64,000 nucleotides of DNA from Setoptus koraiensis (GCA_048013815.1 CM106585.1:3906001-3970000), one strand, 5' to 3'; shown: positions 43,161-51,882, numbered from the stretch's first letter. Numbers and translations are program-made. Notes: generated from the letters alone by a model not told the origin.

Positions 43161-46094
43161 ATAGAGTAAAGCGAGAGTGGATCATCAAGTGGTGAGTCAG
43201 ACACTCGAGCGCTGCCCTCGCTCTCACAACTTGTCATAGAGTCTCTGGCTCGTCTGTGCCGCGCGAAAAGAGATACACAGTTATTGGTGGCGAACGAGAG
43301 GCGGCGGCGAAGCGAACTCGCCATTATCGCCACTACAGGTTGCGGCGCGTTGACGACAACGAGCGTCGGCATCGCCAATGTCAATGTGTGTTCGTGCGTT
43401 GGAATAAGCGCAACTTTCGCTGGCGCTTCACTTTTTAGCTGCTTTGCCAGCAGCAACAGCCGCAGTCAGTCAGATCAAGCAGTGAGAGCGATGAGAGAGA
43501 CAAATTGTGAGATTGTGATTGGCGAAAGTTAGCAACAAGCGGCGATCATTCGCTGCGCAATGCAACTTGTTGCTGTGTGTCGCTATTGTTGTCAGATGAA
43601 TCGCGTCAGATAAATCAAAGCAAACACACTCGTTCGGTTGCCTGTTAGCAGCAGACTGTGTGACACCTACAATGGCACTAGACTCTAGTGACTAGCGCGT
43701 TGTGCCTTGTGTGTTGTGCGTTGTGCGCGCCCTTTGCACCCCCACCCTCATGCACTGTCACTGTTGACTGTTCCATCTTACAATCTTGTTAGTACCAGTG
43801 CAACTAGTGACTAGTCACTTGTGAGGCTAGCGATTAGTTGCTAGTGGCTGTCGCGAATCATGCAAGCGTCGTCTATTGTTGCAATTGTGACAATTGTAAT
43901 TGTGAGACACTTGTGAGCACACACTGACATGTTTACCATTCGCGCACTTATCAGATGCTCGCCTGTTAATTCTTCGTCTTGGACAAATCACTTGTGTCGA
44001 TCGCTGCACTGGCAGCATTAGTCACATGCACTCGCACAATGCGATATTATTAGCATTATTAGCAACATTATTAATATTATTGGCAGCATTATTGGCGGTG
44101 TCATTAGCGCCGGAGGCGCTCGCAACTCGTCACACGGGGCACGACGGAACGCGATGGAACGCGATGGAACCCGATGCAAGTTGCACCGCGTCGCATCGTG
44201 GAGCGTCGCCGTCGCTGCCTCGTGCACTCTGATCGTCGGAGTCTGATCGTCGGAGTCTGATGCGTCTAGGCGCTCGCGTCGAATCACGCGGCCGGCGCAG
44301 CGCGGCACAAGTTTCGCCAGATCGTGCGCCCTGCCGACAGCGAGTCTCTGGCGAATACGACGAGTATGACGAGTGTGGTGAGACTCTCGCCATGAGAGTC
44401 TCTGGCGAACAAATTCAGTAAATAAATTCAGTATGGCGAGGGGCTGGCGAATGGCACAGCGAGTGCGAATGGTATTGCGAGTCGCTGTTTGCGAGTCGAG
44501 TTGTGAGTTGGAACTTTTCAGCGCTCACATTGGCAACTGGCGAGTTGCAGCGAGTGCGCCGACAAGAGTTGCGAGGAGAGCGGGACGCGCACGTTGCATT
44601 GGTGGTCAGACGGCGGGCGAACAAGTTGCCGTTCACATGTTGCCAATGTAACGCTAGTTGTAACGCTAGTTTCCAATTTTCAAAATCGTTCTATATCCAA
44701 ACACATCGCTCACGCTGCACGACGGGCGCATGGGCGCATGGGCGCATGAGGGTATTAAATTGCAGCGCGCTGTAGCGGCGCCGCCAGCGCGCGCGCGCCC
44801 TCAGCATTGTCGGACGAGCCACAGAACTTTTTGGCAACCCTCTCTGGCAGAGAGTCTCTGCATGCATTTGAGCTCTCTATGCATGCATCTGAGCCCTCTG
44901 CTCTCTATGCGAGCTCTCAAGCTCGTTGCAGCCAGTCGAGCCTGAGTTGCACACACGACGATGCTGCCTGCCCCCTCCCTTTGCTCTCCCTCCCTTTGCG
45001 CCCCAGCGCGTCCCCTAGGGCTGCGAGTCTCAGGCCGAGAGTCTGGGCGACTCAGAGCGGCAGTGCCGGCAGAACACGATGGAACTGTATGGTAGTCGGT
45101 GTGTAACTCGCTAGAACTGCATGGTATGACTGCGCGATAGAACCGCCAGATACATACTCAGTACAGTTCCATCCTGTTGAACATACACACAGATGGAAGT
45201 AAACAGAAGGAAAGTGTAGAACTAAATCTCGGTACAGTCGCCGCTCGCAATTGTTTGAGCGCAAGCGTGTGCAACTGTGAACAACTGTTAGTGTGTTCGC
45301 TTTCACTTGAACTGTTGCTGCTACTCGCAGCTCACAGCTCGCAGCTCACAGTTTGTCAGAAGTTCTACACACTGCACTGATAACGTTCTGTCTGTCTGTC
45401 TGTCTGTTTACGCTCAATGGAATAGCAGCACACACACACACACTCAACTGACTGCAGCACTCGCAAGCACGCACGCACAAACGATCTTAGCGCTGATGTC
45501 TTCTTCATCGTCGTCATCGCCATCATCTGTTGATTCCCTATTCGATTATCATTATTTATTTTTCTATATGCACTCTCGCAGCCGCCACAACACCAACAAG
45601 TACAGCACCAATAAGCACAGCCCTGTGTGTATCGTTCGACTATATCATATTTATACACTTATACTCATACTCATACATGTAAGCTAGCTAGTAAGCGATT
45701 GGATTATTTCATTAGCTAGTGAAGTATTATTGGCAAAAACAAGGCTCAACAACAACAACAAGTGCAATATCGACAGGCCAAGAAAGAGCCAAGAGAGAGA
45801 GAGCGAGAGCCAGTTAGCAAGACCGTCGCCGCAGAAAGGCACCAGCAAGCCGATAAGCACACACGACGCACACACACACACACACACAAATGTGCGAATA
45901 GTAGAGATCGAATAAATCTCGCGGCAGCGGCGTCGGCGGCGCTCAATTATCGCTAAATGATCGCTAAAGAAGAAACGCTACAGTTGTGGCAATTATATCA
46001 TTTTATTACTGCTACAACTACAGAGATTGATCTCATTAGATTTAATTTGATTTGCGATAGGCTGCTTGCGCTAATTCGAGTGGAGCAACACAAC

Positions 46095-46129
<35 letters not shown>

Positions 46130-46293
46130 GAGAGGGCACAAGTTCATTTTCTTCGACCACCATCAGTAGTATTAGTATTTTATCAATACTTTATTTTATT
46201 CTCCAAATCATATCGTCGTCGCCACTATCAATGACATCAACACCGACGAATACCAAAACCACCACGCCAGTCGATCGATCGATTTAAGCGTTT

Positions 46294-46315
46294 CTACACA
46301 CACACGCACACACAC

Positions 46316-46359
<44 letters not shown>
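46294..46359. repeat. (CA)n microsatellite (others at about 12560, 12670, 32960, 45870, 46100)
   Basis: Direct inspection. Confidence 0.9.
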
Positions 46360-46362
<3 letters not shown>

Positions 46363-47205
46363 CAGATAGACAGATATAACACATATTACACATATTGGAA
46401 TTATCAGCATCAGACGCTCTCTCTCTCTCTCTTCATCTTGTTGTAAAAATGCTCATGCCACACATTCAACATATACTTTACGTTTGCGAAAATATATAAA
46501 AATGTGATATATTATTATTATCATTTTCGCTATAACAACGACGCCGGCCTTAGAAGCATTAGCAGCGTATCGGTAGTAGTAGCAGTCGTGCAACAACTAC
46601 TAAACAGCGCAACCAGCAGCAGCAATAGTCGACAGATAGTCTCTCTTTCTATCTCCCACTCTGTATATATCTAGATTAGCTCTCTAGCAAATGCAAGGCG
46701 CTAACAAATCACTACTAGCTTACCAGTTAATTAAACAGAGAGTTATTATATTTAATATCAATAGTGATATTGATGAATGCGTTCCCTCAATGAACAACAG
46801 CGCACTAGATCGTCGCTATCACTACTCGTGATATTACAACAACAACTATTACACACACTACTACTACACATACTATAGGCATTGCGAGCCGAAGAATTCC
46901 ACTACGTCTCTCTGTTCCTCTATTTGTCTTTCTCTCCTGTTCCTGAATCAAAGCAATGTTCGCAGCAGTCACGCGCCTGTGAATCAAAAAGCCACTCTTC
47001 ATTATAATAATTTTTATTATTTCTATTATTAGCATCGCCATTATTATTATTATCATCATCAACGCCATTATTACTATTATTATTATTATTACTACTAATA
47101 TTAACACACATTATTATTAGCATACAATTAGTACCTTGGACTAGTGATAGATAAACTAAATGTTTCAGTAAATTTCATCAAGTCAATTAATTATTAGCTG
47201 AGTAA

Positions 47206-49008
47206 ATGAGTACGAGCCCGGAAATCACTAAAACCATGGATGATGATAATTTAGATAAAAACAAAAAGTTATTCCCGCAAAAACTTTGGGAACTCATTCA
47301 TGATGAACGATATCAATCGTGCCTTCGCTGGTCAGAAGACGGTCACCGGGTTTATCTAAATAGGGAAGACTTTGAGGAGAGCTATCTCAAAAAGCCAGAC
47401 CAAAATCAATTTAACACTCAAAAGGCTATCTCATTCGTACGACAAATGAACATGTACGGCTTCAAGAAAGTAGATGATTTCTATTATGAAAATGAAAATT
47501 TCAAACGCGATTCACCTGATTCGCTGAAACGTATGATTCGCCGACATCCAGCTAGAAATTCAGACTTCATAACGCAAGAACTACTTAACAATAATGATTA
47601 TGAGATAAGCACAAACAATTTTATGAAGGCCAATAACAATAGTGTCTTTATCAACACCACCAATAATAATAATAACAACAACAACGCCAAGCTATTAACT
47701 AATAGCAACAACAAAGACAATCAGGACACTCAAGAAACGGACTACACAATAAATCATTGTTCGCCAACACGTTCACCAACTTCGCCCATACCCTTGTCCA
47801 CCAACGCCAACAACCATTTAGTGCCATATACTCAACCTAGCGATAGCTTGAGGGTTGGCCATTATGACTCTATCTCTCCCCAGAACATGGGAACCGATGA
47901 GGAAATCATGCAAAGAGGCCATTGGACACTACCCCAGGATAAGTCTATGTGTACAGCCGAAGAGGTACGCCGAGGGCAGCGTATTAATGGTGTTCCACGG
48001 AACAAGTGTCCAATAATTGGATGCAATAAGAGAGTTAGTCCTACAAATATCTATCCAGCACTGATATCACACTTATATGGTTATCATTTTAGTGGTTTCA
48101 ATTCCTACACGAGATACCATAATCCAAAATATTGTCGCCTGATCCAAAATAGTTCCTGGAGCGATAGAGTAGATGAAATGCATACAGTCCATGATAACAT
48201 ATCACACCAACGAAATCCCGCAAATTTATCCCACGATAGCTACGGGTTCATGAATTCATGTGTCAGAAATGATAATAATAATATCGATCCTGGAAATACG
48301 CATGGTAGCGATGAGGATCTAGAACATAATAATAGGGAAGATATAAGTGAAAATTCCGGTGGTCATAATGATGATGGTGATGATAATTATCAGGAGGACT
48401 CGTTGAACTCTTACTCTCCTACAATGTCGAATCTTAGAAAACGTAATCTGATACAGACGCATTCATCTTCAACATGCTCACCATCGAAGATGCTCAAGCA
48501 TCAAAGGCAAATTCTGCAGCACCAACAACATCAACAGCAGCAGCAGCAGCAACAACCTCAGGATCTATCTAATCATTCTCATCAAAATCAAAGATTGAAA
48601 GCAAATTTGAAAGTAGAATCGCCAAATAACCAAAATTTTGATAATGGCCCGTTTAGTTCCTCTGGTCAAACTGGATCATTGTGTCAGGGCTCTTTTTTAC
48701 CTTCCCCTCAACTTAATTCAATTGCATCCCAACTGGTGAAGAAAATTTCTGACCAGAGAGAAGTGAAGTTAGATTTGGGAGCCTCTATTGAAGCTGAAAA
48801 GTTTGCGGAAAAATTGTTATTTACTCTCATAGACGACGCTGCAATGATTGTCGAACATCAAAACGAATCGAAATCACCTCCGATAGATAAAAACAATAAG
48901 GAGATGCTAATTGACGCTTCAAGTCTCACTTTAGCTCTCAAATTTATGCCTTCCAGACTAGCGGCAGCTTTAAACGAAAAATCCATCTCCCAAATCAATC
49001 ATACGTAA
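47206..49008 (+). CDS. HSF-type DNA-binding-domain protein (divergent, HSF5/HSFY-like) with putative atypical C2H2 finger and C-terminal H2B-like histone fold
   Basis: Single 600-aa ORF. The N-terminus has FPQKLWELI...LRWSEDG...SFVRQMNMYGFKKV...FKRDSPDSLKRMIRR, matching the HSF DBD signature. No obvious HR-A/B heptad repeat. Confidence 0.85.
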   Translation: MSTSPEITKTMDDDNLDKNKKLFPQKLWELIHDERYQSCLRWSEDGHRVYLNREDFEESYLKKPDQNQFNTQKAISFVRQMNMYGFKKVDDFYYENENFKRDSPDSLKRMIRRHPARNSDFITQELLNNNDYEISTNNFMKANNNSVFINTTNNNNNNNNAKLLTNSNNKDNQDTQETDYTINHCSPTRSPTSPIPLSTNANNHLVPYTQPSDSLRVGHYDSISPQNMGTDEEIMQRGHWTLPQDKSMCTAEEVRRGQRINGVPRNKCPIIGCNKRVSPTNIYPALISHLYGYHFSGFNSYTRYHNPKYCRLIQNSSWSDRVDEMHTVHDNISHQRNPANLSHDSYGFMNSCVRNDNNNIDPGNTHGSDEDLEHNNREDISENSGGHNDDGDDNYQEDSLNSYSPTMSNLRKRNLIQTHSSSTCSPSKMLKHQRQILQHQQHQQQQQQQQPQDLSNHSHQNQRLKANLKVESPNNQNFDNGPFSSSGQTGSLCQGSFLPSPQLNSIASQLVKKISDQREVKLDLGASIEAEKFAEKLLFTLIDDAAMIVEHQNESKSPPIDKNNKEMLIDASSLTLALKFMPSRLAAALNEKSISQINHT

Positions 49009-49344
49009 CTATGGTATTGCACAGTCTTGATCGATTCTTATATTTCACTTTGGTGATCTAAAATAACATTAATGTTCCAAAAAATATCAAATTCCAATAC
49101 TGCATTAATCTGTTTACGTAGCGAGAGAAAAAAATCAAAAGAGCAATTCCTAGGCCTGACTCTGCTAGAACCGTCCTCATCCTGTTACTATCCATTGTTC
49201 ATTTTATATGCTTATATTTACAATGTTATTTACTATCCGCCACGCAACCCAGCTGCCTATACTAAGTTAAATTCTTAGATAATAAACACAATGAGTTTTA
49301 AGCTTGGTTCTGAGCTTGTTCAAGAGCCTTTATACGAACTTGTG

Positions 49345-50320
49345 TTACAGTCTGCAATTGAATCCACCGCTAACGCAGATATTTTCCCCAGAAATGAACG
49401 ACGCGTCATCACTACACAAGAAGCTACAAATGCCCGCTACTTCATGCGGCTGTCCCAAACGTTTAGCATCTATGACATTCATCATGAATTCAACGGCGGC
49501 ATTGGTTGTTATAATTTCACTAAATGCCGTTTTGATAATACCGGGCGCAACATTGTTAACTCTAATACTTTCTTTAGCCAATTGCGCTGATAGCTGTTTT
49601 GTCAGTCCACACAATGCTGTCTTGGATACTGCGTACATTCCAATACCCATCGTAGATGAATATCCTGCGACTGATCCAATAAATATGATCGATCCACTAC
49701 CATTATTTCTCATATGGGGCACTACTTTTTGAATAAGAAAAAATCCTGCTTTGAGATTAACATCAAATATCTTATCGTATTGGCTTTCAGAAATATCCAA
49801 TATATCACCAACATGAGGATTAACAGCTGCATTAGAGACAAGAATGTCTATCTTTCCATATTGTTGAATGGTAAAATCTACAAGTCGCTGTCTGTCTTCT
49901 TCTTTTCCAACATGACACACAATACCTGAAACATCTTCTAATTTGTATGATTTAAGCTCTTTTAAAGCCTTGTCGACGTTTTTCCAGTTTCTGCTGCTTA
50001 TCACCACTTTCGCTCCATCAGTGGCAAGTTTTCTCGCGATAGCAAATCCAATTCTATATAGAGGAACAGAAAATTGTGCGACGGAAAGTGATGTTTACCG
50101 TCAATGTCATCATAACTTAGGTGGATTTATTCCCGAATCGAGACGAGACTTACCCTTGTGTCGAGGCGGTCACGATGGCGACTTTATTTGCTAGCCTTGT
50201 TGATGGAACATAAATCAGGGAAGAATCAGGAACTGCAGCGGCATACCGAGAATATTCCTCCCAAGAGTTCGACTCGAGGTCTCGCAACTCTTTTAGTTTT
50301 TCACCCGCGTTCACGTTCAT
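49345..50320 (-). CDS. DHRS4: Dehydrogenase/reductase SDR family member 4 (peroxisomal NADPH carbonyl reductase); exons 50320-50154 and 50053-49345, about 291 aa
   Basis: LANKVAIVTASTQG|IGFAIARKLA is joined across a 100-nt GTAAGT...TAG intron (50153-50054). Also has VSNAAVNP, YAVSK (YxxxK), IRVNNVAPG and a C-terminal CRL PTS1-type signal. The exact start codon is uncertain. Confidence 0.92.
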
Positions 50321-51882
50321 GATCGTAAAATACAATTTTGAATACTTGAGAAAAGTGACGCTACTGTGTTGCTATAAGTTTTCGTGTCAACGGAAGTTGA
50401 ACGATTGGGCGAATCGTTTATCGAGAGCTATCTTAGACTTTCAGTCATCATTATTGCTAACTATGGAAATTGCTCGAGAACGATTGTCGAGTGGACGCTT
50501 AATCTAACATCAGTTGGTGCTTATCATCTCATTTATACTAAGATTACTTACATATGGAGAGCAATGGTACTGCTATAACTGATTTGAATACAAGAGCTAA
50601 ATGAAACTGCAATCATTGGTTCAACTTGATAGCTAACAGGCAATCAACAAATGTTTCTAATACTCTGCGCTCATATTCTGTCATTACATCATAAAAGTAC
50701 GGACTGCGGCTGGAGGTATCAGCAGATTTCCACACGGTACAGGGATGTATACTGGGATTGAGTTATGAACGCACCACAAGGGGGTGTACACTTAGTTATG
50801 TGAGCATGCTTCATAACCGGTTATCCGTTGATGAGATAGCCCATTTGATTATCAGATGTCCTTGAACAAATTCAACTGTATCTCGTGTCTATCTAACAGT
50901 TTTTTGTTTGTTGACTTTTGGGGTATTCTCGAAAGCTTGGAACTAATCATTAGGGTGATCAAGCTTGCCAGGCATAATATTTTTATGTTGTACACCCATT
51001 AAATTCCAACAGATTTTTTTGTTTCCTCTTTGATTTGCTTGCCCTTTTATTTGATTTGCTGCTGTTCATGTTGACATAAGAAAATTTTCCGCGTTTCATT
51101 GTACAGATCTTTGATTAGATGCATCTCCGACATTGGCACCATCGTGTCGTGCAATCTAAGGCCAGACTGAGACTCACGACTCCATGAGGAACTTTACTTA
51201 TGATTATTTATTGAATTCAACCATAAACTTGTGAAATGGATTTTTTTTTCTTCGCTAGTCTCTCATTTTCTACTGCCTCTGTTTAATAGGATCCTTAGCT
51301 AGTGGGGAGATAAAAAATTAACTCAGAGAGTGGAGGCTAGAGATACCGACATTTCAAATTTCCAAATACAAAACAGATTTGATTATCGACTCACAAGGCA
51401 ACCTTGGTGATCATAACTCTCGGCTTTTTTCCCAATGGGTCTATCCTGTAATCTCGACGAGTCGCTCCGAATCGGTATAACCATTTACTCGTTTTATTTT
51501 TCGTTCCTGGAATATTCTGGTCTTTTCGGGACCTTGCGCATGTACCAACCAGAATATTGCGAAAACGAAGGCAAAAACGGATAAATGGTTATCCGTATTC
51601 GACTCGATCGTCGGGATATGCAAGAACGGACTTATTGAAAAAAAAAACTCCGAGAGTTGAGATCACCTAGGTTATATTGTGAAAGGAACAAGCGACGTTG
51701 ACGCCCAGCTGTCTTGGCGAGGTTGGTGATGACCAATAACTTATCTTTTATCTGTGGATTTATTAAAACAACCTCACTACCTCCAGGCCGAACTCACCAG
51801 AATGTCCCTGCTACTAGGTTGTCTCATAAGTAACAAGAGGCCCACTCACTGACGAACTTGTTAGAGATCAATCATACAAGTC

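Follow-up and report, generated by a model that had tools for sequence, protein, structure and literature searches.

An atypical HSF-type gene of Setoptus koraiensis joins a heat-shock-factor DNA-binding domain to a predicted C-terminal histone fold

Introduction

Canonical heat-shock factors (HSFs) trimerise through an HR-A/B coiled coil that lies directly after the DNA-binding domain. The locus described here, in a 64,000-nucleotide stretch of the Setoptus koraiensis genome that we call the window (CM106585.1:3906001-3970000), encodes an HSF-type protein with no obvious coil of that kind and with a helical domain at its C-terminal end, and it raises the question of what this domain is and whether it could do the work of the coil. 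A sequence-only reading of the window had taken the tail for a histone fold, likened to H2B, with the TAF12 fold as the alternative. We compared the two ends of the protein with solved and predicted structures, with profile libraries and with a family of relatives, and asked which parts of that proposal hold.

Results

An HSF-type DNA-binding domain in a complete reading frame

The gene is a complete, intron-free ORF on the plus strand (47206..49008) that encodes 600 amino acids and a stop; it has no internal stop codon, and a stop codon lies directly 5' of its ATG. An HSF-type winged-helix DNA-binding domain occupies aa 23-113 (47272..47544, plus strand), where Pfam profile PF00447 is matched over all of its 100 positions (1-100) at E 2.9e-18; the match scores 66.7 bits, where the gathering score is 22. 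This domain aligns with solved HSF domains, best with that of K. lactis HSF (E 1.6e-8) and also with those of HSF2, HSF5, HSF1 and HSF4. Its recognition helix, SFVRQMNMYGF, aligns to SFVRQLNMYGW of the K. lactis protein, and the pattern SFVRQ.N.YGF is near-invariant among the relatives in the full-length family alignment. Judged by these sequence matches, the HSF-type DNA-binding domain is genuine. No second copy of it, or of the C-terminal tail, was found in the 64-kb window.

The DNA-binding domain is separated from the tail by a variable low-complexity middle (aa 114-499; 47545..48702, plus strand), rich in N, Q, S and P, with poly-N and poly-Q runs; this middle is unconserved across the family and gave no significant match in a Pfam search. 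The HR-A/B coil had been said to be missing, and a simple scan bears this out: among 35-aa proline-free windows, with a/d occupancy above 0.5 as the mark of a heptad repeat, no strong a/d window was seen outside the tail. By this crude measure the ORF has no obvious HR-A/B coil.

Two further observations concern the middle of the protein. A Cys/His-rich, zinc-finger-like stretch is read from the translation at aa ~265-330 (47998..48195, plus strand); it has the form CPIIGC-x15-HLYGYH, that is, C-x4-C-x15-H-x4-H, and has no Pfam match. It is kept in P0001, an orthologue with 91% identity, with a dN/dS of 0.076 over aa 225-335, and is missing from all other family members in the full-length family alignment. 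The poly-Asn and poly-Gln codon repeats (47623-47692 and 48512-48563) differ in length between the ORF and P0001, and short-read contigs break at them.

The C-terminal tail is predicted to adopt a histone fold

The C-terminal domain covers aa 500-600 (48703..49005, plus strand), and the segment 48715-49005 on the same strand, the final ~97 aa of the 600-aa ORF, translates to SIASQLVKKISDQREVKLDLGASIEAEKFAEKLLFTLIDDAAMIVEHQNE ... MLIDASSLTLALKFMPSRLAAALNEKSISQINHT. AlphaFold2 modelled the tail with a pLDDT of 44 in the absence of an alignment and with a pLDDT of 83 and a pTM of 0.67 when it was supplied with A2, an alignment of 19 family tail sequences. The resulting monomer model has three helices, which span its residues 2-18, 25-55 and 72-98, and a loop of 16 residues separates the last two. 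In the numbering of the plus-strand ORF it predicts helix 1 at aa 501-517, L1 at aa 518-523, helix 2 at aa 524-554, L2 with its insert at aa 555-570, and helix 3 together with a short C-terminal helix at aa 571-597; the proline at aa 582 is invariant in the family alignment. Every element of a histone fold, namely helix 1, L1, a long helix 2 (about 28-30 aa being the criterion), L2 and helix 3, is present in the model, and the 31 residues of helix 2 compare with a typical histone-fold length of about 30. The tail residues and helix boundaries given in the sequence-only reading agree with both the translation and the model.

Structure searches, which had been put forward as the check on the fold, returned histone folds from three libraries. 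With Foldseek against the PDB, histone-fold chains made up nearly all of the top 50 matches, among them TAF9, TAF6, NF-YB/C, MHF1/2, H3, H4, CENP-A and CENP-T; the best rows had probabilities of 0.96-0.99, while the E-values were weak, at 0.17 or above. VIA-align, an exhaustive search that is independent of Foldseek, was run against 48,161 representative PDB chains and placed histone folds at all of ranks 1-14, with Z from 6.4 to 5.6, on a scale where values of 6-6.6 fall in a range described by its authors as possibly a common arrangement; its top matches included CENP-X, a SAGA TAF, TAF9, dTAF62, H2B, TAF11, the archaeal histone HPhA, CENP-W, TAF12 and H3.V. A shape search of the ESM Atlas gave histone-fold families in nine of ten rows (TM 0.51-0.64). 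One relative, P0044, whose tail is 33% identical to that of the ORF, has an ESMFold monomer model of its own in the Atlas that shows the same fold and matches TAF10, TAF11, TAF8, Tada1, TAF9, H4 and an archaeal histone. The language-model neighbours of three of the tails all belonged to the histone-fold clan, with scores below 0.9, the level from which the tool counts a neighbour as more than a lead.

Sequence profiles gave a sparser picture. When the A2 profile was compared with the PDB, only two matches appeared at E<=10, and both were to fission-yeast CENP-A (Cnp1), at a marginal E of 0.0086; the alignment keeps its register from helix 1 across L1 and along helix 2 to the A-x-H with which that helix closes. 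Neither the ORF tail alone nor the last 202 aa had a meaningful Pfam match, and none of the Pfam histone-fold families searched (PF00125, PF00808, PF02969, PF03847, PF03540, PF15511 and others) reached its gathering score in any of the 19 family tails, where the best scores below the cut-off were to TAF10 (E 0.016), CENP-T_C (0.058) and TFIID_20kDa (0.14).

Taken together, the AlphaFold2 model, the structure searches, the profile match, the family alignment and the dN/dS values given below mark this segment as a domain, and the models and profiles make it very probable that the domain is a histone fold. Some doubt remains because the absolute scores are modest and no Pfam match was found in 19 members of the family. 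The doubt can be given a concrete form: the tail might be a lineage-specific three-helix module that has come to look like a histone by convergence, for example a transactivation or protein-binding domain that does not form a handshake dimer. In its favour, no Pfam histone family is significant, the structure searches score modestly for so short a helical domain, language-model scores stay under 0.9, and helix 3 and the C-terminal helix are modelled as one helix of 27 residues. Against it, the 14 best of 48,161 representative chains are all histone folds, three libraries and two independent predictors agree, the CENP-A match keeps its register from helix 1 to the A-x-H of helix 2, and helix 2, at about 30 residues, is as long as is typical. 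We regard convergence as unlikely, and the histone fold as the reading to carry forward.

Class of the fold

The tail had been likened to H2B in particular. In a second VIA comparison H2B (9inc_B) indeed scored Z 6.6, with an rmsd of 4.1 over 73 aligned residues, but it was tied with H4 (Z 6.5, rmsd 2.5), HMfB (6.4, 2.2) and CENP-X (6.4, 2.6), and H2B, H4, H3/CENP-A, the TAFs, CENP-S/X and the archaeal histones all fall within Z 5.8-6.6, so that the likeness is to the histone-fold classes as a tied group. Profiles made from parts of the tail gave no sequence signal for H2B: that of helix 3 and the C-terminal helix matched no H2B chain at E<=10 in the PDB, where H2B is abundant, and that of helix 1 to helix 2 found only CENP-A, weakly, at E 0.16. 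A proline after helix 3 (LLPSKL) is invariant in the family, and H2B has the motif LLLPGEL; by sequence the one does recall the other, but the motif is too short to carry weight.

The charge of the tail is also informative. Nucleosomal histones contact DNA at L2. Across the family tails the helix 1-helix 2 segment has a net charge of -9 to +2, and the L2 inserts, of 3-47 aa, have net charges of 0 to -11. The tail is neutral to acidic and carries an acidic insert of variable length in L2. Together with the tied structure scores and the lack of an H2B sequence signal, this makes the pairing with H2A and the delivery of a histone variant that had been suggested for the tail unlikely. The tail resembles protein-interaction folds of the TAF/CENP-S/X type, the opposite of a nucleosomal histone that wraps DNA, and a role as a surrogate for nucleosomal H2B is improbable. 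The alternative mentioned alongside H2B, a TAF-type fold, fared better: a TAF-like role in protein-protein contacts fits better than an H2B role. No TAF family in Pfam is matched at its cut-off.

These results bear on the specific proposal that the tail is an H2B-class or TAF12-class fold which pairs with H2A, H2A.Z or a TAF4-like protein and so recruits either a histone variant or a TFIID/SAGA module to specific DNA. H2B is among the tied top VIA matches and aligns as far as model residues 90-93, with the C-terminal helix included; the invariant proline of LLPSKL can be set beside the LLLPGEL of H2B; and one member of the family touches TFIID_20kDa (TAF12) at E 0.14. Against the H2B class, H4, H3, HMf, TAF6/9 and CENP-S/X lie within 1 Z of it at lower rmsd (2.2-2.8), a profile built on helix 3 with the C-terminal helix draws no H2B chain at E<=10, the only sequence match is to the H3-like CENP-A, and neither the charge range nor the acidic inserts are those of a DNA-wrapping histone. 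This assignment to H2B or TAF12 is improbable, and a histone fold of tied class with a TAF-like character is what we retain.

Relatives and conservation of the two modules

A word search with the tail alone found only P0001 (609 aa), encoded on a 6.1-kb Logan contig that carries the same short-chain dehydrogenase (SDR) neighbour as the window. A full-length search found 40 proteins with DNA-binding domains about 74% identical to that of the ORF, and iterated profile searches within this set identified a C-terminal module homologous to the ORF tail in 15 of them. An exhaustive phmmer search of 1.84 billion representatives with the tail returned six proteins, all from the same family; three of these (P0041-P0043) are further tail carriers, represented by partial gene models, which brings the carriers to about 18 relatives. 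A third word search, with the tail of P0044 as query, added no new relatives, and neither the word searches nor the exhaustive phmmer search of the 1.84 billion representatives found the tail standing alone or in any other architecture. The proposed search for the same architecture in relatives has thus yielded 15 carriers in which both modules are encoded by a single ORF, in addition to the three partial models.

In the full-length alignment the conservation of the family is confined to two blocks, the DNA-binding domain and the tail. The C-terminal domain is about 85-100 aa long in the family, and its approximate consensus begins A..LV..IA..R...LD...I.EA.RYTE.F.ETL.D.A.VIARHSN and resumes after the variable acidic insert as I..S.LTSALKLLPSKL. 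The precomputed annotations of family members record PF00447 only. In the searches run, the ORF appears from its sequence to belong to a lineage-restricted family of HSF-type proteins. Its gene neighbours, which are of SDR, ELMO and OCRL-like types, recur on the contigs of relatives, and this recurrence argues for orthology.

Two loci among the relatives deserve separate mention. At the P0041 locus the DNA-binding domain and the tail lie in separately called ORFs (L004:8492-8788 and L004:10322-10708) on one strand, the former encoded 1.5 kb upstream of the latter, an arrangement suggestive of an intron, of a frameshift or of a faulty assembly at this locus. The contig Ga0209372_1000079 (JGI) of another relative carries a tail-less HSF-type paralogue, P0019 (479 aa, with a C-terminal LDLAKPS motif; L005:6001-7440), 10.4 kb upstream of the tail-bearing P0044 (785 aa; L002:10001-12358) and on the same strand. 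No tail-coding DNA was found within 6 kb downstream of P0019. The 64-kb window holds the tail-bearing type only and no tail-less paralogue.

Selection and probable transcription of the gene

Comparison of the ORF with P0001 gave 17 synonymous and no non-synonymous differences in the DNA-binding domain (dN/dS 0), 32 synonymous and nine non-synonymous differences in the tail (dN/dS 0.05), and 129.5 synonymous and 62.5 non-synonymous differences in the whole gene (dN/dS 0.09). These substitution counts indicate purifying selection on the gene.

In run X7, contigs span 47286-47622, 47693-48511 and 48564-49189, and so take in both the DNA-binding region and the tail. One X7 contig skips 50054-50153, a segment with CT..AC ends that corresponds to a GT..AG intron in the SDR gene on the minus strand, and no X7 contig covers the intergenic stretch at 46.4-47.2 kb; because of this spliced contig and this uncovered stretch we take the run to be RNA-like. 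The gaps between its contigs are confined to the poly-N and poly-Q repeats, which also interrupt the DNA-type contigs from runs X2 and X3. Both halves of the gene are likely to be transcribed, given the inferred RNA nature of X7. Whether they form one transcript had been posed as a check on the fusion, and the outcome does not refute the fusion: RNA-like contigs cover both parts of what is one ORF, in relatives as well, but no single X7 contig joins the DNA-binding domain to the tail.

An annotation artefact, whether a pair of genes, a pseudogene or a chance ORF that is never transcribed, is highly implausible. In its favour one could cite that no RNA record spans the whole ORF and that X7 is RNA by inference. 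Against it, 600 codons run without a stop, the same two modules share single ORFs in 15 relatives, the 129.5 synonymous differences go with an overall dN/dS of 0.09, the contig gaps are at repeats and are shared with DNA contigs, and synteny with the SDR, ELMO and OCRL-like genes is kept in relatives. The proposal that an HSF DNA-binding domain and a C-terminal histone fold are joined in one gene is supported by the single ORF, the AlphaFold2 model, the structure searches and the CENP-A profile match.

On either side of the gene the window has the following features. The SDR gene, of the adh_short type, lies at 49345-50600 on the minus strand, tail-to-tail with the HSF gene, and has a 100-nt intron. 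Upstream, at 45300-46450, there is a dense array of (CA)n/(GT)n and related microsatellites at which all Logan contigs break.

Discussion

Histone folds are obligate handshake dimers, and from this we infer that the tail is most likely an oligomerisation or partner-docking module. Our preferred reading is of an atypical, coil-less HSF in which a histone fold provides dimerisation or docks a partner; with the architecture and this general role of the fold judged jointly, we consider it likely on the modelled structures. The tail might form a homodimer and so bring two DNA-binding domains to paired GAA-type repeats, or it might form a heterodimer with a non-nucleosomal histone-fold protein of the TAF/SAGA/CENP-S/X type; in either form it would do the job that the HR-A/B coil does in canonical HSFs. 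This claim rests on predicted structures, and the family behind it is narrow and comes from unannotated assemblies.

A bolder version, in which the factor plugs directly into a histone-fold assembly, is tentative and on the unlikely side. Here the TAF-like tail would bind a subunit of TFIID, SAGA or the CENP-S/X type and displace that subunit's usual partner, the HSF-type domain would tether the general machinery or a histone-fold chromatin complex to GAA-type elements with no need of a conventional activation domain, and a tail-less tandem paralogue such as the one seen in a relative could act as a competitor.

The dimerisation or docking role that we prefer matters for a wider question. In textbooks HSF-type factors are trimers held together by a coiled coil, which raises the question of how the coil-less atypical members (HSF5, HSFY and HSFX) assemble; the present family serves as a natural experiment that sets an HSF DNA-binding domain beside a different module, of an obligately dimeric kind. 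It bears on how oligomeric state shapes the grammar of heat-shock elements, for example the use of dimer as against trimer sites. Should the partner turn out to be a TFIID or SAGA subunit, the protein would also link an activator directly, at the level of domains, to the general machinery.

How does this protein compare with known systems? It shares with the canonical HSFs (HSF1-4, Drosophila Hsf and yeast Hsf1) the DNA-binding fold and the SFVRQ.N.YGF recognition helix; unlike them, it has no HR-A/B coil that the crude scan could detect and has a predicted C-terminal histone fold instead. HR-A/B is present in HSF1, HSF2 and HSF4, HSF5 lacks HR domains and yet oligomerises in vitro, and some invertebrates have extra HSFs (PMC12366260). 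HSF5 is in this respect a precedent for an HSF that oligomerises with no HR coil. With the atypical HSFs of vertebrates, HSF5, HSFY and HSFX, the ORF has in common an N-terminal HSF domain, the lack of HR-A/B and HR-C, and a long low-complexity remainder, and the DNA-binding domain of HSF5 (8zys_A) matches it at E 7.6e-6. The match of the ORF domain to HSF5 is no better than its matches to yeast HSF and HSF2. In those parts of the literature that our search covered, HSF5, HSFY and HSFX are not described as having a histone fold, and the C-terminal module is confined in the searches run to its own family.

On the side of the tail, the subunits of TFIID and SAGA (TAF6/9, TAF10, TAF11/13, TAF8, TAF12/4 and Tada1) and CENP-S/X/T/W are alike in having a histone fold of non-basic, protein-protein character, and some of them have long L2 loops; the top structural matches include 6f3t_F, 7edx_i, 1taf_B, 1bh9_B, 3b0b_C and 9ynu_E, with TAF9, TAF10 and TAF11 in the Atlas. 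The ORF tail differs from them in having no significant Pfam membership, and we know of no TFIID, SAGA or CENP histone-fold subunit that is fused to an HSF DNA-binding domain. H2B and CENP-A/H3 are alike in that H2B ties for the top Z and CENP-A is the sole sequence-profile match, whereas the module of the ORF is non-basic, its L2 is long and acidic, and it forms part of a larger protein and does not stand alone as a histone.

NF-Y offers a parallel of another kind, since NF-YB and NF-YC are subunits of a sequence-specific transcription factor built on a histone-fold dimer, and they are matched by the tail in Foldseek (7ah8, 7c9p and 4awl). In NF-Y the histone-fold pair contacts DNA and specificity comes from NF-YA; the ORF, in contrast, has an HSF specificity domain and an acidic histone fold in one chain. 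The sequence-only reading knew of no described HSF with this architecture, and a full-text literature search, as judged by the titles and the openings of the abstracts of the papers listed, likewise produced no protein that combines an HSF with a histone fold. Each domain is known by itself, and it is their combination that appears to be new; if the models are right, the family adds a case in which a histone fold has been recruited into the chain of a sequence-specific transcription factor.
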